Source: Octopus sinensis (Eukaryota). From it: a stretch of 64,000 bases of DNA. Both the position numbers and the translations under genes were made by a program. Positions 426 through 64,000 of this stretch are shown here, piece by piece. The notes under the pieces are model-generated. The model searched no databases. It was given only the letters and a program-made list of their open reading frames with translations, and was not told the origin of the DNA. The DNA lies in NCBI RefSeq assembly GCF_006345805.1, contig NC_043006.1, forward strand, positions 27,032,001 to 27,096,000, written 5' to 3'. Each line of letters opens with the position of its first letter. Position 1 is the stretch's first letter.

Positions 426-562
426 TTATTTACATTTGACAGATATTTGTACTCATTTTGTTTGTTGTTAATACGTTTTGGCTGATATACCCTCGAGCCT
501 TCATCAGGTGTCTTGGGGAAATTTCAAACCTGGGTTCTCATTCCTAAGGTATTTTTTGATGA

Positions 563-601
<39 letters not shown>

Positions 602-612
602 TATTATTATGT
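426..612 (-). mobile_element. Inverted tail-only copy of the hammerhead-bearing element
   Basis: Reverse complement of the 900-1010 tail, with tcatcag at 501-507 and (TTA)n at ~560-610; GAAA has decayed to AAAA. Confidence 0.7.
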
Positions 613-799
613 GCTGCTTCTTTTAGTTTTTTGTATTTTCCAGTGGTGTTCTCTGTCTATCATTTTAACTTCATCCCACAGGGGCACATATGCTAGGACA
701 CAACAATTTCCCAAGCAGACCAAGTACAAATATGAATAGCATATGGGAACCGGTATTGAGGAAGGATAGGAAAATATTAGATTTATAAGCCCTAAAATT

Positions 800-1041
800 C
801 ACTCCATAATTGCCCACAGGCATATGGCATAGTGGTTAAGAGTGTGGGCTAACCCCGAGTTCGATTCCAGGAAGTGACCTGAATGATAATAATAATAATT
901 AACAATAACAAAAACATCAAAAAATACCTTAGGAACCCAGGTTCGAAAATTTCCCCAAGACACCTGATGAAGGCTGGAGGGTATATCAGCCGAAACGTGT
1001 AAATAATGTACATAATTCCTCATCTCTTAAATATAGAACTG
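800..1041 (+). mobile_element. SINE-like element: tRNA-like head + (AAT)n linker + hammerhead-like tail
   Basis: Box A TGGCATAGTGG (825-835), box B GTTCGATTC (859-867); CTGATGA (964-970), GGCTG/CAGCC stem, GAAAC (992-996). The cleavage-site/stem I segment is deleted in this copy. Confidence 0.7.
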
Positions 1042-1082
1042 TAGTTACTAGTCATCGGATACCATTGTATCTCTTCATACTG
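1041..1082 (-). ncRNA. Degenerate hammerhead motif (probably inactive)
   Basis: Minus strand: CAGU-AUGAAGA-GAUAC(AAUG)GUAUC-CGAUG-ACUAGU-A-ACU. Stem II and a palindromic stem III are kept; both core boxes are mutated. Confidence 0.45.
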
Positions 1083-3950: not shown

Positions 3951-4019
3951 CATATACAGGGTGCAGTAAAATCACAAGATTAACAGAGAGAGAGAGAGAG
4001 AGAGTAGTCGTTGTGGAAA

Positions 4020-4570
4020 ATGCACAACGAGAAATACATTTTCTTAAATAATCAAAAGAGCCCTTAGAGGTAATTTCTGTAATCTAATAAGCAGTATAAA
4101 AGAACATTTTGAAAGTATAGTTCTTAGAATAACAACTAGATGGAAAAGGTTCAGACACCTATTACCTCTGTTGATCACAAAAAGTCTCTCCTTCAGAGTG
4201 AAAATTAGATTGTGTGAAGCTTCCATATGAATAGCAATAGTACATGAAAGTGAAATGTAGGCTGTAATGCAGAGAACATGTGAAAACTAGAAATAAATGA
4301 AAATAGCTTGCACGGCTGATGTGCAACATCAGTGAACATGTACAATGAAGTGCAAACATAAGAGAAAAAGTTGAGCATAAAATTTATCAGATGTAGTGTG
4401 CAAGTGAGAAATGTACTGTTGTGGTCATGCGATGTGGACAGCTGTATAAAGACATGCCAATCACTGAAAGTGGATAGGTCCTGTGAAAGAGAGAAACCTA
4501 GGAAGACAAAAGCTGAGGTAGTAAAGATTAACTTCAGGATGCTGGGCCTTATGGAAGAGATGATAAACCA
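4020..4570 (+). mobile_element. RTE LINE RT C-terminal fragment
   Basis: Decayed WKRFRHLLPLL..SLSFRVK and PRKTKAEVVK motifs. Confidence 0.7.
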
Positions 4571-6267
4571 GATGATTGGCAATTTGCTGTACTTGAAAAA
4601 AACCAATGCATCTCAACAAAAAATGGTCCTAAAAGCATATTGTTTATGCCTATCTGTCTCTTTCATGCCTTCCCCACAATTCACCTTCCTAACATCCATC
4701 TAACTAGAGCCCTATTTACTCAAGTACTGTAATTATATGAGAGTAGAATTGCACATATTCCATATCTACTTTTGTGATACCTGTTATCCCTCTTCTTAAA
4801 ACCACTTCCATTTGTTAACCATTCAAACATTTTCAATCTCTGCCTTAACTACTTTATTTTCCATTGAATGTCCCTTTACCATGTACATCCTTTAATGTCG
4901 CCATCAATCATCCCCAATACCTTTATCATTCCCTTTTTCCACCTCTGCACTGTATCTATGCACCCCTCTCACCCTCACTATTTTTCATTTATCTAGTTTT
5001 ATCTCCTTCTTCACCCACTATTTCCTTCACCTTCCTGCTGGCAAAAAACTGATATTCACTACTGAATATCACCACCGCCTTTATTTTCCATTCATCTTTA
5101 AACATGTTACTCTTTCACTCTCACAAACCTATCCATCCAAGATCCTCTGTCCCTATTCTCTCTTTATCCACCTTTTTGTGCCTTGAAGTTATACCCTGAT
5201 ACCTCACCTTCACCAAATTCAAGCAAGGAAGCATCATATTGATATCATATAAAATGATGATCTAGGAACAGATTATTAATCACAGGCCATCTCACTTTTT
5301 CAGTGTTGACAAGCATTAACCCTCATATTTTATTCTTTGTACTAATTGAAATTAGTACAAACATAAAAATAGTTCATTAAAAGACACCAGCCAATTATAC
5401 AGAAATAATAGTATTTAACAATTTTTCTGAATATATTTGGTAACACCTGAATACTGCATATAGTGAAATTAGTTGTACATGTTTATCTTACAGCATTTAT
5501 TCCTATTTTACTCCTTATGAAACTATGACTTACATAAGTCAAGCATTCCCAGTTTGGTGGTGGATCCATCTGGGACAAATAAATGCAGTTGATGTTGACA
5601 TTACATTACAGGAAAAACTCTAAGTTACAGCGCAATCAAACAGCAGAAGCAAGATTCAAGCACATTATTAGAATATTTTGTTTGTAACAATTCCTTTGTA
5701 AAAAAAAGTATGCATTATTAAAATTGATTTTTGACAGTCTTTGTAAACTGAGATAGATTAGGTTTAGGAAGTAGTTAAGAATGGAAAAATATTGAGAACC
5801 ACTGTTCTAGAATATAAATCATATCTTCCCAAATTAAACACAACAACAAAAGCTAAACTAAATCTATTTTAACAAGGAAGGAACAGAGATGAAACTCTAG
5901 TATTGAAAGAGGAACCTTCTTTATAATGCCAATCCACATTTCAAGTGAATGCAAAGGCAGCCCAAAAACCTATGGAAAAAAATACACAATAAGACAACCA
6001 GATTTTCTCTCTGGTTGTGTGCAAGCTGGTAAAGGAATGTGAACAAGTGACTTATCCAACCCATGCCAGCCAAGATCCACCACCCTCCAAAAAAAAAAAA
6101 AAAAAAAAAAACTCAGATATTAAAGAAAATTCTTTTTCTCTTTTTTGAAAATCAATACATCTTATCTGAGTAGGCTGTGTTTTTAAGATTATTTTGCAAC
6201 TGGTCCCATTGTGTAAATGCTTTTTAACATAGATTGAGCTGATCAAAACTTTGCAAGTGGAAATATA

Positions 6268-41744: not shown

Positions 41745-42739
41745 AGGTCATCTTCATGGATTCATTTCTTCGGGTGGTATAACATTAATGGATGTTTACC
41801 ACTTTTGATCAGTGCGAAGGTTGATTGAGTTATTGAGTTAACTCAACCAACCTTCTCAAAATGTTGTCAAATCAAATGAGCAGAAAGATAATATCATGGT
41901 ATAAATTAATGTTGACTGCACGTGGAATTATATAATCCACCTTAAAAAATGAAAACAACACTTTAAATGTTACTGACGTGTTCTCTCAATGGTTTTCGAG
42001 TCAAATGTGAACCACGTGCCTAAAATATATTTAGCTTGCATTGGTAAATACATTTTCATTAAAAAAAAAATTTAAGCATTTCAAATTTTCTAAAAGGGAA
42101 ACTAACAATGTCTAATGCTTACATTATTGAATGCACATTACTTTCATCGGATATTCTATAGTACAAACGAAGAAACAACCCCTAGTCAAATATCTCCTTT
42201 ATTTAAGATAAAGTGGAAGCAGATTTGGCTGCTACTTCCAACAGGTCGAGATTCCCTCGTGGTGAAATTAGGCTTGAAAATAAAACATCGTAAACATTGA
42301 GTAACAGTAAACAGAAAGTACATAGCACACTCGCACACATTTATGACTGAAGATATTCTTGTTGATACTATCAATAGAGATAGATTGCAATGCCCTATCG
42401 TCATACCAAAATCTATAATAAGCAATTCACTTCATTCCATTCATTACACACTGCATGAAACTAACACTAAAACATCACCATTAAACGAACTATGCTTTCA
42501 ATAGTTAAATAGTTGCAGACAAATATTATAATGAAAAGTCTGAGTTTTACAACACCAGCAGGATCTTTTATAGATTAAAAAAAAAAAAACACGGTAAAAT
42601 CTAGTAAAAGGAAAATAATGGTTTAAGTGATTGTTAGACGTTGTGGAAATTTCAGGTAAGAACATGCTACACGTGATACAAAGCATAAAAGAAAAACAGA
42701 AATTAAATTTCGAAAGGTTACCATACAAAATCTACTTAC

Positions 42740-42793
42740 CACAATACCAATTTCTGGTTTCCCTTTTAAGGTGCCATTTTTTGACGATGCCAT
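42740..42793 (-). CDS. HPRT1: HPRT coding exon 1 (MASSKNGTLKGKPEIGIV)
   Basis: ATG at 42793-42791 (context gagaattATGG), 54 nt open, ends GTG|gtaagt; phase 0 joins exon 2 (IKDDY), equivalent to human 'VV|ISDDE'. Confidence 0.85.
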
Positions 42794-45882: not shown

Positions 45883-46382
45883 TAAATATTGATGTAGATA
45901 TACAAAAGCTAAGAGAACTAACTCAGAATGGCTGGTGGTGGTGGTGTGTATTTGAAAAGCAAATACAGATATGTTAAATACCATGTAGCATAAATTCTTG
46001 ATGGATGAGAGAGAGAGAGAGATGTCATGTAGATGGGTAAATTGCAAGAGGGTAAGGGGAGAGGCAGCATAGTGCATGGAGAGAGAGTGAGAAATGTATG
46101 ATGGTTAAAGAGAGATAATTTGATAGTACCTGATGGTGATCAATGTAAAATGTGGGTTAAGAGTAACGGTATTAATGAAGGCTGGATATCAAGTGAAATG
46201 TTTTTTGGTAGTAAGACAGATAAATGGTATCAGGGAAAACTAGTGAAATATGCAATTTTGATCATATTTAATTATAGCAGCAGAACATTGAATTATGCAG
46301 GTTATAGAGGAGCTGATGATAGAGAGATGATGGACGGTGAGGGGGCTTATGGGTGAGGACCCCAGTTGTGCATATATATATA

Positions 46383-46628
46383 GCAAATAAGAAAATGGAG
46401 GAGAACAATAGTTGGTTCATCAACTTTAGGACATTAAAAATGTTAACTTATTTATTTATTAAACTGATAATTATAATAACAACATACATATAGCATATTA
46501 TTCAATGCATATAAAATAAGGATACAAGTAATTATTAAAAATATCAGTTTAATAAATTAATAAATTAACATTTTTAATGTCCTAAAGTTGATGAACCAAC
46601 TAATGTTCTCCTCTATTTTCTTATTTGC
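46383..46628. repeat. Inverted repeat, 87-bp arms with 72-nt spacer
   Basis: 46383-46469 vs 46542-46628, 4 mismatches by manual alignment. Confidence 0.9.
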
Positions 46629-46720
46629 AACATAAATTAATGGTGAAATATCTCTTTACCTTCACCCATTTAATACACTAGGTAAGTTAATTGCAATGCA
46701 ATAAAAAGGAGATCGAAAAT

Positions 46721-46763
46721 CCACCTGACGAATGTCATTGAAGACATGAAACGATTGTAGTGG
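46721..46763 (+). ncRNA. Minimal type I hammerhead ribozyme motif (intact core)
   Basis: CCAC-CUGACGA-AUGUC(AUUGAA)GACAU-GAAA-C(GAUU)G-UA-GUGG: stem I CCAC/GUGG, stem II 5 bp, 2-bp stem III, GUA triplet, predicted cut after 46759. Confidence 0.8.
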
Positions 46764-46879
46764 CGGTTTATTTCTTTATATTAAAAATTTTTATGTATTG
46801 ATTAAGTCTTTCCTTGTTTGTATTGCAAAATAGTGGTTTTGTCTCGAATTAATATTATATATATATATATTGTGCTTCC

Positions 46880-47110: not shown

Positions 47111-47761
47111 CATCTATTTACAAGATATTGATTTCCTAATTAAGTCATTAATAAATAAATAAAAATAAATCATTATTGAATAATATCACCCTTTGAGGTA
47201 GAATGTAATGCATCTGATGCAAATATTTCAGACAACCTTAACTAATGAGAACAGCCTATAGTGTTCATGTTAATAATGCTACAAGGAAGCTAATTACACT
47301 ACTACATTGCAGAGAAAGAAGCAACTGCTATTATTGAGGCAGTGCAAAAAACAGTGCCACTGTAACCTGATTTCTCATCAGAGGTCAGTGACACAATAGG
47401 GTGTACAAAAATAATGCAAAGATTTGGGAGTGGAGACTGGATCTTCAGCATTAAGCTACAGAATGAATTATTGACACATTTAATCAAGCTTACACCTGTT
47501 CAGTTTTAACTATTTCCAAGTTTATTGACATACACGATAGACTATGTCATTCAAGATTAAAATATCTACTGCATTTTATTGGAGCAAAGAATCTCCCTTC
47601 TCTACAGAAGATGTGAGGAAGATTTGTGCATCTTATGGGTCTATGCTGGGCTATCACTCTCAAGAAGACACTCTTATCAAAGCAACAAAGTCTATGGAAC
47701 ACCTGAGTATGGACTTCAAGGGATCTTTGTCCACTGCTTCACATAATTCATACTTACTATT

Positions 47762-48070
47762 CTATATTTTTGAGATGAGGAATTATGTACATTATTTACA
47801 ATGGATGGATAGGTATACTCACCTTGTTTGTTGTTATCACATTTCAGCTAATGTACTCTCCAACCTTCATCAGGTGTTCTGGTGGAATTTCGAACCCAAA
47901 CCTTCATTTGACTAATGGGGTACACTGTTCTCATTCCTAAGGCATGTTGCTGATGTTATTTTTCTGTTGATTCACTCTATAATTGCCCACGGGCATACAG
48001 CATAGTGGATAAGAGTGTGGGCTACTAACCCTTGGATTCTAAGTTCAATCCCAGACAGGGACTTGAAAAA
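47762..48070. mobile_element. Second locus of the same element: minus-strand hammerhead tail (47762-47960) abutting a plus-strand tRNA-like head (47973-48070)
   Basis: tcatcag at 47867-47873 in a tail homologous to 426-560 and 1000-1040; head 'cactctataattgcccacgggcatacagcatagtggataag...gttcaatccc' homologous to 800-870. Confidence 0.65.
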
Positions 48071-49239: not shown

Positions 49240-51015
49240 CATGCAGTCCAATCTAGTGATAAAGGATGAAATTTGGCCTCATCTTTATGATCCAGAAATG
49301 AAGGCTCAGTCCATGAAAAGGCATCACAATTCTTCACTAAGACCTAAAAAGTTTAGGAACCAGCAACTAGCACAGAATTTTCTGGAATGTGATTGTACCA
49401 TGAACAGTGAGCAGTACACTGAGATGCCTAAAAAGCATAGAAAAACCAACAGGATGAAGAGACTGAACAAGAATCTGAAAATGATCTACATTTACCATGA
49501 CAATGTGTGACCACACATAACTTTATCGATTAATCAGACAACAAATCGGGTTGGTAAGTGATCCCCCATTCACTATATGAGCCCAAATCTGGTACCTTCT
49601 GACCTTCCACATGTTTGGTTCAATGTAGGACAGTCTTTGATGATAAAGTAGGTTTAATAGTGCACACCTGAATTTTCTCCAAAGAGGATTCAGAAATTGA
49701 GTTCAGTGAATGTGCAAATATTAGGTTGCTCTGAAAATAATGACCACTCTAAGTGTTGTGTTTTGAAATGTAATTTTATCATAGCATTATAATTATATTT
49801 TAGGTGAATTTCGACATACTTAATAATTGATGTATGCTCTTTAATAATTTTTTACTTATTTCAGATGGAAAACATTCTTGAAGCATAGGTGCCCTTAATT
49901 ATGAACATGACAAAAAAGGACCTTTGCTTACTTTTCTTGCATGAGTTCAAGCTTGGGCACAATGCCTCCCAAACTGCTGCCAATATCAACAGAGCATGGG
50001 GAGAGGAGTCCACAAGTGATCGTACAGTATGAAGGTGGTTTCAAAAATTCCATAGTAGTGATGACAGCCTTGAAGAAGATAGAAGATGGTCATGCAGTTT
50101 TGACAATGAACAATTAAAAGCAATTGTTGAACAAAACTTACAATGTGTCAGAGAAATATCTCAGGCCTTTGGTGTCGGTATTGCAATGGTCTGATGCAAT
50201 CTGCAGAAGATTGGCAAGGTAAAAGCTCAATAAATGGGTACCACATGAGCTCAATGAAAATCAAAAAGTTTTGCGTTTTGAAGGGTGCTCAATGCTTTTT
50301 CTGCAAAACACTAATGATCTTTTTCTTGATTGAATAGTCACTTGTGACGAAAAGTGGATCCTTTATGATAACCATAAACAATCAGGTCAATGGCTTGATT
50401 GTGATGAGTCCCCCAAACATTTTCCAAAGCCAAAGTTGCATCAGCAAAAGATTATGGTGACTGCCTGGTGGTCTGCAATTGGTGTTGTCCATTACAGCTT
50501 TCTAGAAGCCAATCAGAGAATTACAGCAGAGGTTTACTGCAATCAACCTGCTGAAATGCATATTCACTTGCAAAAAATAAGACCTGCATTGGTGAATTGG
50601 CATGGCCCAATTCTGCTCCACAATAATGCAAAGCCACATGTTGCAAGAATGACACTGCAGAAACTCACAGACTTGGGATATGAGACTTTACCACATCCTC
50701 TTGATCTTTCACCCACTGACTACCATTTTTTAAGCATTTAAACATGTTTTTAAATGATAACACTTTCAGGTCCAAACCAAAGGTGGAATCAACTTTCAAA
50801 GATTTCTTAGCATCTAAGCCAATAAGTTTTTATCAGCGAGGCATAAATAATTCTCGTTGAATTGTGGAAGAGATGCATAGATGTTCACAGCTCATACTTT
50901 GACTAATCAAAACATTTCTATTGTTAATTTTTCCAGAATAAAATTATGTTTCTGAAATCTGCTATTATTTTTAAAACAATCTAATTCATTGCTTGTTGTG
51001 GTGTGTATGCTGAGT
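49240..51015 (+). mobile_element. Older mariner remnant (DETW..YDPE type) split by the 49721-50984 element
   Basis: DEIWPHLYDPEMKAQSM...PKKF (ORF 49241-49510), SPNLVPSD-like at ~49580, GIQKL-like just before 49721, and IA..G.Y.E*-like end resuming at 50987-51015. Confidence 0.65.
49721..50984 (+). mobile_element. Full-length inactive mariner (HsMar1/cecropia-like) with TIRs
   Basis: TIRs TTAGGTTGCTCTGAAAATAAT / ATTATTTTTAAAACAATCTAA after a TA; 1264 bp. Decayed transposase 49901-50906 with LHEFKLGHNASQTAANINRAWG, KWVPHEL, TCDEKWILYDN, HNNAKPH (second catalytic D changed to N), SPTDYHF; stops and frameshifts. Confidence 0.92.
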
Positions 51016-59329: not shown

Positions 59330-60090
59330 TCACTGTTTAGCAGTAGAGTCATGAATATTGTCGACAGTGATTTGCGTTGGACAAAACACATCGCTAAAAT
59401 TGTCAAGAAGGCTGAGGGTGTCTTGGCATCACTCACCAAATCCTTTGTGAGCCGCTCTCCGGTTATCTATCTGCGGCTTTATATAGCTATGGTAAGACCT
59501 CACCTGGAATTTGCATCACCGGTCTGGAACCCCTATCTTGCCCAGGATATCAATCGTCTGGAAGCTGTTCAGCGACGTGCAACCAAAAGAATACCCTCCA
59601 TCAGGCAATTGCCATATCCTGAACGCCTGACTTCCCTGGGCATGGACACATTGAAACTCCGACGTCTGGCAGCTGACTTGGCAGACACCCATAAAATTAT
59701 CAACCATCGTACAAACAATAACTCTGAGCACCTTTTCAAACTCCACCCATCTAACACCTGTGGACATATTTACAAAGTCAGAAAACAACACAGTTCCCAT
59801 GACTTCAGGAAACATTTTTTCACGCTGAGAGTTGCTGAAGCATGGAACAAACTGCCGGCATCAGTTGTTAGTTGTCGGAGCACTGCATCCTTCAAAACTT
59901 CCATGCTTTCTGAGATTCGCCAACACAACACCTGATTTTCTCCCCTCCATACACACACAGGCATGTATCTGACTCATACATTGTTCGCTTTCCAGACATT
60001 TTTACATTACTGCATGTACTTTATATGCACTTTCTGACAAGTTGTGGTGCACCTGAGCACTGTATACAATAATTTCATTATTATTATATG
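59330..60090 (+). mobile_element. CR1-clade LINE, 5'-truncated (RT C-terminus, 3' UTR, (TTA)n tail)
   Basis: ORF 59351-59935 (194 aa, uninterrupted): VRPHLEFASPVWNP, LEAVQRRATK, YPERL..LGM.TL..RR, FF..RV..AWN.LP; short ATT tail near 60078-60088. Confidence 0.92.
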
Positions 60091-61226
60091 TTGTGTTACA
60101 GCTAAGAATTAAACAGTTATTTGTTTGTGTTTTGAGAGGTAGAAAATTATATAGTCATGGTGGACAAACATTTCTTTAACACATGATATAGCAGTGACCT
60201 AGAAACCTGTTTTCACATGGACCTTCTCTGATTTGACTGTGGAGCAAAACTTGAATTCTTAGCCAAGTTTTATATTGTAATATAAGAAATTTTTCACTCA
60301 GTGTCGTACAATTGAATGACTGCAGATGAAATACTATTGGTTGACAATTAGGCCGATATCACCTGATAGCAGTGATCTCTCTTTAATAAGTTAATGCAGT
60401 TTCAGTTTTAAATCCTGCTCAGTGTGTTAGCCAGCTCAATGCCCTGAAATGTAGATTGTTATCAAACTACTTACTGCCATTTAAGTGTCAGTTTTATATT
60501 ATTTTGTATTTACAGATATTAGCAGGTGACCTTGAGTGAAGATGATACAACATTAGCCAATTCCGAAAAGCAGAGATCATTGTAGTGGTGGTGGTGGTGG
60601 TGAGAGAGAGAGAGAGAGTTAAATAATGCACAAATATAAAGCAATCACATGTTCAGCATGTGGCTAATAAAAAGAAGTGTACACTTTATGGACGAAGGCA
60701 GTTTTACCTGGGCCTCACTCTCTTGAAAACAAACCTCAATAAACTCAGAAATACACAAACCAGTGAAGTCAAATCTGTACATAACGACTTCTCATACAAA
60801 AAAGGAATCACATAGAAACATGCCATATTCACTCAATTTACAAATAAATCATTATTTTACACAAGCAGAAGTGGACTGAGCCGTCGGTCAACTGGGCACC
60901 CCCCGAGGGTCTAGAGCACTGAGGGACCCGCCCTCAACATGTTATCTCTACTAAAACGCACATTCAAAGGTAAACAGTTATACCCAAGGGCTCTTAATAC
61001 TCTCAGTTGGCCCCTATACCTAAGTGACTACAAAGATTAATTAAACGAAGTTAATCATCGTTTTATGGTATATTTTACCAACATAAAACAGTACATTTTA
61101 GAATATTTTAAGGTAAACGAGGATTCCATAATTCCAGTGAAAATATTTTATGAATCAATGAGGGAACCAGACTAATTAAACTGACTTAATTAACCGTGTT
61201 ATAGTATATTTTATAAACAATAAAAT

Positions 61227-62031
61227 GATCTTTTCCTTTTGAACAGCACATATCAACACAATTTCTAGTTAACTAAACACTTTTAAACTTCGTATACTGG
61301 TAGAATGTGTTTATAAAACATCATTCTTTCTTGGCTTTATTGAGAAAATTCTATAGTTTGTAAGATATTTCATCTGAAATTTCGAGCATTTCGGCAATTT
61401 TAACCAATCACTGACCTCCATTTGGGGTGAAAACATTCCATGCTGTATGAATATGTCCCTCGTTTAAGAAACAGATTGGGTTTATTTACATTTGCGAAGA
61501 AAAAAGATACCCTTCCCCCACCCCTAACCCTAAATCTTACCCTAAATCTAAAATAGATTGAAATGCAATAGAGCGACACTAGGGTTATAATTATGGGTGA
61601 CATTTTCATTTGACACCGCTAGAAAAAAATCCCATTTTCCGTAGCGGTGTCGTATGAAATTGTCACCCATAATTATAACCCTAGTATCGATCTATCGCAT
61701 TTCAATCTATTTTAGATTTAGGGTTAGGGTTAGGGGTGGGGGAAGGGTTTCTTTTTTTCTTCGCAAATGTAAATAAACCCAATCTGTTTCTTAAACGAGG
61801 GACATATTCATACAGCACGGAATGTTTTCACCCCAAATGGAGGTCAGCGATTGGTTAAAATTGCCAAAATGCTTGAAATTAAAGTGGAAATACGTTACAA
61901 CATATAGAATTTTCTCAATAAAGCCAAGAAAAAATGAAGTTTTATAAACACATTCTACCAGTATACGAAGTTTAAAAGTATTTAGTTAACTAGAAATTGT
62001 GTTGATATGTGCCGTTCAAAAGGAAAAGATC
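61227..62031. mobile_element. 805-bp foldback (palindromic) element
   Basis: ~390-bp arms starting GATCTTTTCCTTTTGAAC and ending GTTCAAAAGGAAAAGATC, loop near 61622-61641; arms carry (CCCTAA)/(TTAGGG) motifs and CCAAT boxes. Confidence 0.9.
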
Positions 62032-62667: not shown

Positions 62668-64000
62668 GAGGGAGGAGGAGCTACAGACGTTGGACATAGA
62701 AGGTAGCTGGAAATTCCTACGGGACAGCTTGCTGAGTGCCACAGACCAAGTCTGTGGATGGTGCAAAGTCCCTTCCAGACCTAGAGTTACGTGGTGGTAG
62801 ATAGTGCCATTAGTGCAAAGAAACAGGCCTGGAAAGCCTGGAGGGATGGGGGTAGCAGGGAACTGTACCAAGTAGCTAAAAGGGAGGCTGGGCGGCAGGT
62901 ATATAGCCAAAGATGTAGCAGAAAAGAAGAAGTTTGCCAATGTCCAGCGACGTGAGGACCAAAGAACTGAGGTATTTCGGATTGCTAGACAGTGTGTGAG
63001 AGAAAATAGTGATGTTACAGGAGAGAAATGTGTTCGCATGGATGATGGGGCACTTGCTTTTAATGTTGGTGAAAAGAAAGAGGCTTGGAGAAGCCATTAT
63101 GAAAGACTGCTGAATGTGGAGAATGAATGGGAGGAGGAGAGCCTGCCAAATGTTGACCCAGTAGAGGGACAAGCTATCCGAATAGACAGCTCCCTTGTAG
63201 TTAAGGCAATTAAGGGTATGAAACCAGGTAAAGCCCCCGGCCCATCAGGAATCACGGCTGAGATGCTTAAAACAGCTGGTTATGTGGGCTATGGCCTAGT
63301 CACCCGCATTGTAAACCAGGTAGTTCATAATGGAGTCATACCCAATGACTGGTGTAGCAGCACCAAGTCAACTGCTACAAGGGTAAGGGTGATGCTCTAG
63401 ACAGAAATAACTACAGGGGTATTAAACTGTTGGATCAGGTGATGAAGGTCACACAGAGGGTCATAACCCATCTCATTAGGTAGAGAATTTGCTTAGATGA
63501 GTTCGGTTTTGTGCCGGGTAGAAGCACCACTGATGCTATATTCCTGGTCCGACAACTGCAGGAGAAGTACCTAGCTAAAGATAAACCCCTCTACATAGCT
63601 TTTGTGGACTTGGAGAAAGCCTTTGACAGGGTCCCCCGATCCCTTATCTGGTGGTCGATGCGGAAACTGGAGATTGACGAATGGCTAATAAGGGCTGTAC
63701 AGGCCTTATACAGAGAGGCTGTCAGCAAGGTGAGGATTGGCAACGAATATAGTGAAGAATTCCGGGTAGAAGTAGGTGTAGACCAAGGTTCAGCCCTCAG
63801 TCCCCTTTTATTCCTCATAGTCCTCCAGGCAATAATAGAGGAATTCAAAACAGGTTGCCCCTGGGAGCTCCTCTATGCTGATGACCTGGCCCTCATAGCA
63901 GAATCATTACCGGAACTAGAAAAGAAATTTCGGGTGTGGAAGCAAGGGTTAGAATCAAAGGGCCTTAGAGTAAATGTAGCAAAGACCAAAGTTATAGTAA
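62668..64000 (+). mobile_element. RTE-clade LINE, 5'-truncated, reverse transcriptase region (runs off window)
   Basis: FVDLEKAFDRV, QGSALSPLLF and ELLYADDL (YADD at 63874-63885) motifs; frameshift/stop near 63360-63490; starts at a (TA)n tract. Confidence 0.95.

Follow-up and report, generated by a model that had tools for sequence, protein, structure and literature searches.

A minimal type I hammerhead motif in a lineage-specific microsatellite insertion upstream of HPRT in Octopus sinensis

Minimal hammerhead ribozymes linked to Penelope-like elements (PLEs) are present in thousands of copies in many invertebrate genomes. Exapted hammerheads of amniotes, namely the intronic HH9 and HH10 of Rfam and the discontinuous hammerhead of the CLEC2 3′UTR, are single-copy and lie near or within a host gene. 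These amniote hammerheads are deeply conserved, stable as monomers, equipped with long helices and tertiary contacts, and located inside transcripts.

In canonical PLEs, hammerheads are placed close to the 3′ end of the element (PMC4209133, PMC8557442). Most of the PLE minimal hammerheads are single dispersed copies that have been attributed to truncated PLEs (PMC4209133), PLE copies are often 5′-truncated, and (TA)n is the preferred target of some PLE clades (PMC8557442). This (TA)n targeting was observed for the Naiads, which are without canonical hammerheads, and hypothesised for Neptune (PMC8557442). In vitro, a single PLE hammerhead from Schistosoma gave no detectable cleavage, and dimers and trimers displayed only weak activity (PMC4209133). 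Non-LTR retrozymes are tandem repeats of ~170-400 bp with a type I hammerhead in each unit (PMC7229834; bioRxiv 10.64898/2026.07.22.740005). In O. vulgaris, PLEs of 190 families make up 6.83% of the genome (191 Mb), and 336 of their insertions are recent (PMC13282606 and its Supplementary Table 1); PLE activity in this species is documented after its split from O. bimaculoides 13-33 Mya (PMC13282606).

Here a hammerhead motif is described from the window, meaning the whole 64,000-nucleotide stretch of O. sinensis DNA that was analysed. The sequence at 46721-46763 is a genuine minimal type I hammerhead motif of a known kind, and its origin is considered below from its architecture, its chance expectation and its genomic context.

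Architecture, chance expectation and predicted folding of the motif

The plus-strand sequence at 46721-46763, CCACCTGACGAATGTCATTGAAGACATGAAACGATTGTAGTGG, parses by direct reading as a complete minimal type I hammerhead with the layout CCAC / CUGACGA / AUGUC-AUUGAA-GACAU / GAA / ACGAUUGU / A^ / GUGG, and the predicted cut falls after 46759. Helix I is formed by CCAC at 46721-46724 and GUGG at 46760-46763 in 4 Watson-Crick base pairs. The core box CUGACGA, positions C3 to A9, is found at 46725-46731 and the core nucleotides G12 A13 A14 (GAA) at 46748-46750, both by direct reading and by alignment to the Rfam RF00163 core. Between them lies the helix II hairpin at 46732-46747, with AUGUC, the loop AUUGAA and GACAU making 5 Watson-Crick base pairs of which 10.1-11.1 is A-U, and this hairpin was recovered in all predicted folds. 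The helix III segment ACGAUUGU at 46751-46758, running from A15.1 to U16.1, is self-complementary with two G.U pairs and can as a monomer form only 2-3 base pairs round a loop of 2-4 nt. The nucleotide at 46759 is A17 of the GUA triplet in hammerhead numbering, the putative cleavage nucleotide with the cut predicted 3′ of the base. All the general type I core positions were thus found in place (C3 U4 G5 A6 N7 G8 A9, G12-A14, A15.1-U16.1 and an H17, here A), as was the type I topology of three helices round the core with helix I open and both ends of the motif in helix I.

The motif was recovered by a descriptor scan written by the authors. The initial annotation had proposed an Infernal search with the Rfam hammerhead models, and in this search RF00163 (Hammerhead_1) aligned in register to 46721-46763 with 10.8 bits (E 6.8, 86 nt searched), below the gathering threshold of 34 bits. 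No match to Rfam was obtained in the whole window at gathering thresholds, and at E<=10 over 701 nt no hammerhead was reported, only a sub-threshold MIR2630-like match on a neighbouring inverted repeat. That the hammerhead core and stems are in place, as initially annotated, is borne out by the sequence, the descriptor scan and the in-register alignment. At the DNA level stem III indeed differs from a palindrome by one C-to-T change, as also annotated, and in RNA the 8 nt are fully self-complementary through G.U pairs.

The chance expectation was estimated with a first-order Markov null of window composition, scanning both strands of 17,000 simulated 64-kb windows. The base descriptor (helix I of at least 4 bp, helix II of at least 4 bp, 0-1 bulged nucleotides and helix III of 4-12 nt) was matched by chance about 0.004-0.005 times per simulated window of 64 kb, a rate that fell to 0.0005-0.0008 per window when helix III also had to be self-complementary. 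Candidate quality, defined as all pairs Watson-Crick, helix II of at least 5 bp and an 8-nt self-complementary helix III, was reached in none of 12,000 simulated windows. Extrapolated to a genome of 2.8 Gb, the null leads one to expect roughly 20-35 motifs whose helix III is self-complementary, and 150-200 of the looser kind. Since 20-35 chance motifs are still expected in 2.8 Gb, the motif alone is not decisive and evidence from its context is needed.

The same descriptor scan turned up another complete minimal type I motif, without sequence relationship to the first, at 56469-56430 on the minus strand (CCUU/CUGAAGA/C/GGGU-CUUUGU-ACCU/GAA/AUAUAU/A/AAGG). Its features are the PLE-typical unpaired C after A9, a G.U pair at 10.1-11.1 and a helix III, AUAUAU, that is perfectly palindromic. 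By chance such a motif would arise with a probability of about 0.0005-0.005, which counts in full, because the window was not selected for it. No Rfam match and no paralogue in the octopus DNA compared were found for this motif, which is the nearest other one to 46721-46763, being 9.7 kb off, on the opposite strand and with an incompatible helix III. Another hammerhead-like motif was seen with a relaxed descriptor in O. bimaculoides, at 49618-49665 (+) of the orthologous locus L001 in a species-specific stretch of HPRT intron; its helix I has 7 bp, its helix III is a perfect ACUAGU, position 17 is C and helix II consists of only 3 A-U base pairs, and the chance rate of this relaxed class is about 0.0065 per 64 kb.

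As a monomer, the motif was predicted to adopt the hammerhead fold at -5.1 kcal/mol versus -7.8 kcal/mol for the minimum-energy fold, in which part of the CUGACGA box is paired with the helix III segment. For two copies, the minimum-energy structure given by RNAcofold, at -20.8 kcal/mol, is a double hammerhead with both helix II hairpins, an 8-bp intermolecular helix III in which ACGAUUGU pairs with itself including the two G.U pairs, helix I of 4 bp and both cores unpaired. The predicted double hammerhead matches the dimer model for PLE hammerheads (PMC4209133), which was likewise proposed for amphibian hammerheads, and it backs the initial reading of a PLE-type minimal hammerhead with a short self-complementary helix III suited to dimers. 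Folding energies were not better than those of shuffled sequences (z = 0.02 for the motif and z = -0.75 for the 205 nt that carry it), and because these z-scores are unremarkable, thermodynamic stability supports neither side.

The insertion upstream of HPRT and its surroundings

HPRT is located on the minus strand of the window, with the last coding exon near 9.1 kb and the start of the gene mapped through the orthologous O. vulgaris locus (L002). Coding exon 1 (MASSKNGTLKGKPEIGIV) was placed at 42737-42793 by tblastn with the O. vulgaris HPRT protein P0001. Its start codon at 42793 puts the motif 3.93 kb upstream on the opposite strand, in agreement with the ~4 kb first annotated. The window's HPRT exons share 97% identity with O. 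vulgaris HPRT, and over the orthologous loci the window shows 97.3-99.2% identity to O. vulgaris and about 90% identity to O. bimaculoides (L001), which places it in the O. vulgaris/sinensis complex. No other gene is called in the 10-kb flank upstream of HPRT in either of these references. The DNA divergence of the window from the O. vulgaris assembly is about 2%, and in HPRT exon 3, at 23082-22888 (-), the window encodes Arg where P0001 of O. vulgaris and O. bimaculoides has Gln (ENRGIV vs ENQGIV). Taken together, these two differences point to O. sinensis or a divergent haplotype as the probable source of the window.

A 205-bp segment at 46642-46846 (+), in which the motif takes up positions 80-122, forms the body of a lineage-specific insertion and is 99% identical in O. 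vulgaris. The segment contains no ORF, and the predicted cut site lies 87 nt from its 3′ end. Identical AATTAAT heptamers, read directly at 46635-46641 and 46847-46853, may form a 7-bp target-site duplication, evidence that is weak because the flanking DNA is AT-rich. Remnants of an (AT)n microsatellite, the putative insertion target, are present on the left at 46372-46382, where the O. bimaculoides alignment stops, and on the right at 46854-46870 (46852-46870 by Tandem Repeats Finder). The same microsatellite holds, next to the motif segment, a 246-bp MITE-like element at 46383-46628, which was recognised as inverted repeat I5 with 106-nt arms of 92% complementarity and is likewise absent in O. 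bimaculoides. This element gave the sub-threshold Rfam match to the plant MIR2630 hairpin family mentioned above (51.5 bits versus a gathering threshold of 144), which was taken as an artefact of composition and hairpin structure.

Over 300 bp, the orthologous O. vulgaris sequence matches the window at 99.3% identity with only two substitutions, one of which is inside the motif. The O. vulgaris motif is otherwise intact, the alteration being C46752->U in position 15.2, a CpG-to-TpG change by which the pair is kept as U.G. With this variant the minimum-energy structure of the dimer is no longer a hammerhead. As the dimer fold is lost in O. vulgaris and one of the two substitutions falls in the motif, there is no sign of constraint.

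The O. bimaculoides alignment halts in the (AT)n at 46372-46382 and resumes at ~46868, and nothing between these points is alignable to that species even with 7-nt words. The O. bimaculoides site (L001 ~5073-6114) contains its own 5′-truncated LINE fragment with a SINE-like, (GAT)n-tailed 3′ end, and the (GAT)n tail abuts the right flank directly. Leaving this LINE insertion aside, (TA)n adjoins the right flank in O. bimaculoides too, and the simplest reconstruction of the ancestral state would be a (TA)n microsatellite joined to TGTGCTTCC. The same stretch of L001 also contains an assembly gap, which leaves loss in O. bimaculoides, instead of gain in the vulgaris/sinensis lineage, as a less likely alternative. 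Altogether one microsatellite was used by three different elements across two lineages.

Searches for relatives of the segment were negative within their scope. Neither regular expressions nor tblastn revealed a trace of reverse-transcriptase or GIY-YIG coding sequence beside the motif. No second copy of the segment or motif was found in the window by self-BLAST or by a search allowing 3 mismatches, and repeat searches, Tandem Repeats Finder and the descriptor scan found no tandem or nearby same-strand partner of the motif in the window. The 205-bp segment had no paralogue in the ~300 kb of octopus DNA compared (the window with L001, L002 and L004-L006), which constrains its copy number only to fewer than about ten thousand. 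Three distinct 20-kb loci recovered with a LINE ORF of the window contained no paralogue, PLE ORF or hammerhead motif. The exact pattern had 0 matches in JGI metagenomes and IMG/VR viral contigs, as expected since neither collection includes octopus DNA. Kinship of the 205-bp segment to the PLE-like repeats called family A was considered and rejected, the local alignment score being inside the shuffle null; a 17/20 match around TCGAAA(A/T)TCCACC was therewith dropped and is not evidence of relatedness.

Other repeats in the window were also recorded. A repeat family resembling a PLE 3′ end occurs at 440-700 (-), 870-1060 (+) and 47740-47930 (-), with orthologs in L001 at 61330-61500, 60880-61060 and 4010-4200. 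The repeats have an ORF tail of the form WDEVK[MI]IDREHHW..KLKEAAH..(N)n..LRNENPGSKFPQDT that ends in UGA UGA, and these stop codons form a CUGAUGA box followed by a bulged A, a helix II of GGCUG/CAGCC and then GAAAC. Two of the copies are an inverted pair ~420 bp apart, an arrangement described for PLEs. The CUGAUGA...GAAAC module does not fit the full hammerhead descriptor, position 17 being G or A and helix I being absent. These repeats are putative PLE 3′ ends, a label which we take to be a lead only, coming from a 13-aa tblastn match (E 0.2-0.35) to a consensus sequence, and a 53-aa consensus of the ORF tail used as protein query gave no candidates. A reading of the repeats as tRNA-derived SINEs, suggested by their GGTTCGAA box, was rejected, since the spacing is unfit for a B box and an ORF tail resembling the C-terminus of a PLE endonuclease precedes the GGTTCGAA box. 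A mariner-type transposase remnant and two ORFs for C-terminal parts of LINE reverse transcriptase were seen at 50334-50738 (+), 59351-59935 (+) and 62996-63400 (+). Relatives of the 194-aa ORF among these, 72-94% identical, are annotated in both O. sinensis and O. vulgaris. Two ORFs of the window had no match in exact look-ups, and many SINE copies with (ATC)n-type tails are scattered across the window.

Origin of the motif

The motif probably derives from a PLE or a PLE-dependent retroelement that inserted in a TA microsatellite in the O. vulgaris lineage. The 205-bp segment would be what is left of the 3′ end of a PLE or of a short, PLE-mobilised non-autonomous element. Its insertion into the (AT)n microsatellite, 3.9 kb upstream of HPRT, would have happened in the vulgaris/sinensis lineage once this had separated from O. 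bimaculoides. With 87 nt between the cut site of the motif and the 3′ end of the (AT)n insertion, and no ORF remnant adjoining, the arrangement fits a 5′-truncated PLE copy. In the parent element the pseudo-LTR would hold the ribozyme, close to the 3′ end. On a read-through or tandem transcript with two copies, the short self-complementary helix III segments of these would pair to give the double hammerhead, each core of which would cut after H17 so that the transcript is trimmed to unit length. A solitary copy has no partner and is therefore expected to be nearly or completely inactive. The copy at 46721-46763 is probably such an inactive relic, young and still intact, its intactness presumably a matter of youth and not of selection, and no effect on HPRT would be expected.

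A variant of the main reading, possible and held tentatively, is that 46642-46846 is a complete short non-autonomous element, a solo retrozyme-like monomer mobilised by PLEs. The 205 bp fall within the 170-400-bp range of metazoan retrozyme units and have no coding remnant, the possible 7-bp flanking repeats suggest a discrete unit, and both helix III and the missing bulge after A9 resemble canonical metazoan type I hammerheads (RF00163 alignment; PMC7229834). Retrozymes have moreover been reported as PLE pseudo-LTR derivatives that also occur as solo monomers (bioRxiv 10.64898/2026.07.22.740005). However, Tandem Repeats Finder and repeat searches of the window show a single copy at the site and no tandem array, the 205-nt RNA is without unusual self-complementarity (z = -0.75), and the boundaries of the unit are not defined by any second copy in the ~300 kb compared. 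The Rfam score is also far under threshold, so the loop-loop features of canonical retrozymes are probably absent. A further and rather doubtful proposal is that the segment represents an undescribed cephalopod hammerhead element, a retrozyme- or SINE-like passenger of PLEs that targets AT microsatellites and was mobile after the split. If true, such an element would have a hammerhead variant with A10.1-U11.1 and no bulge after A9.

Chance, in which AT-rich intergenic or unrelated transposon DNA happens to fit a short consensus without any ribozyme ancestry, is an unlikely origin. The motif holds only about 30 bits, the 20-35 motifs (150-200 looser) expected in 2.8 Gb leave room for it, and the window was chosen since a reader had noticed the motif, which is a selection effect. 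A chance match would also be in keeping with the lack of a paralogue in ~300 kb, of an adjacent PLE ORF, of G10.1-C11.1 and of the bulge after A9, and with the low Rfam score and unremarkable folding energy. Against this, candidate quality was reached in 0/12,000 simulated windows, a second independent motif occurs within the same 64 kb, and the motif lies in a lineage-specific microsatellite insertion at the expected distance from the 3′ end. PLEs make up 6.83% of the O. vulgaris genome (PMC13282606), and motifs truly derived from PLEs should therefore be more numerous than chance ones by orders of magnitude. The context evidence, that is the second motif, the abundance of PLEs in O. vulgaris and the genomic setting, supports a non-chance origin.

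It is very improbable that the motif was exapted by the host to cut plus-strand transcripts, divergent or upstream antisense, that arise at the HPRT promoter region, for although the motif is intact, retained in O. vulgaris as well as in the window species and oriented for a plus-strand transcript running away from the promoter, it is missing from the O. bimaculoides locus and thus not a conserved feature of it, one of the two substitutions in 300 bp versus O. vulgaris hits the motif and thus gives no sign of constraint, the start codon is 3.9 kb off and the 10 kb upstream are free of gene calls, solitary minimal hammerheads had no activity in vitro (PMC4209133), and the predicted monomer fold pairs part of the core. 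The cutting of divergent HPRT-promoter transcripts suggested in the initial annotation is accordingly unsupported for this solitary copy.

Significance and comparison with known hammerheads

The motif carries little weight for the biology of HPRT, being probably one more PLE relic of the sort expected in a PLE-rich octopus genome. Its modest value lies in a dated insertion specific to one lineage: the vulgaris complex carries it and the O. bimaculoides site is empty, which suggests that hammerhead-bearing elements were recently mobile in octopus. The site also illustrates how a (TA)n microsatellite captured a hammerhead segment, a MITE-like element and, in O. bimaculoides, a LINE.

Compared with the HH9, HH10 and CLEC2 hammerheads of amniotes, the octopus motif is likewise single-copy and near a host gene, whereas it is lineage-specific, minimal and intergenic and shows no sign of constraint. 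Unlike the hammerheads of retrozymes and satellites, it lies outside a tandem array, and tertiary contacts between loop 1 and loop 2 are not evident. With canonical metazoan type I hammerheads (RF00163; PMC7229834) it shares the CUGAcGA...GAAAC-G..-..GU-H layout, which aligns in register, and a helix III of 2-3 bp with a small palindromic loop, but it differs in scoring 10.8 bits against 34 and in having a helix I of 4 bp instead of 6 bp. Amphibian hammerhead motifs need a dimer for activity, as the octopus motif would by its predicted fold.

Relative to the PLE minimal hammerheads (PMC4209133), the octopus motif has A10.1-U11.1 where G10.1-C11.1 is highly conserved, lacks the unpaired nucleotide between A9 and 10.1, and has a helix II of 5 bp with a 6-nt loop where that of PLEs has 6-8 bp. 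The flanks show neither a reverse-transcriptase/GIY-YIG ORF nor a second copy of a pseudo-LTR. In the A9 junction, 10.1-11.1, helix II and helix III the motif thus looks more like a canonical metazoan type I hammerhead. The helix II pair and the missing bulge depart from the PLE consensus, and if confirmed by paralogues they would define a cephalopod variant. With the PLE minimal hammerheads (PMC4209133, PMC8557442) it has in common the type I topology, a 4-bp helix I (4-5 bp in PLEs) without recognisable loop-loop contacts, and a very short self-complementary helix III that gives an extended helix III from two copies. It shares with them also the position near the 3′ end of a short retroelement-like insertion, the occurrence mostly as single dispersed copies, the (TA)n microsatellite target and a PLE-rich host genome.
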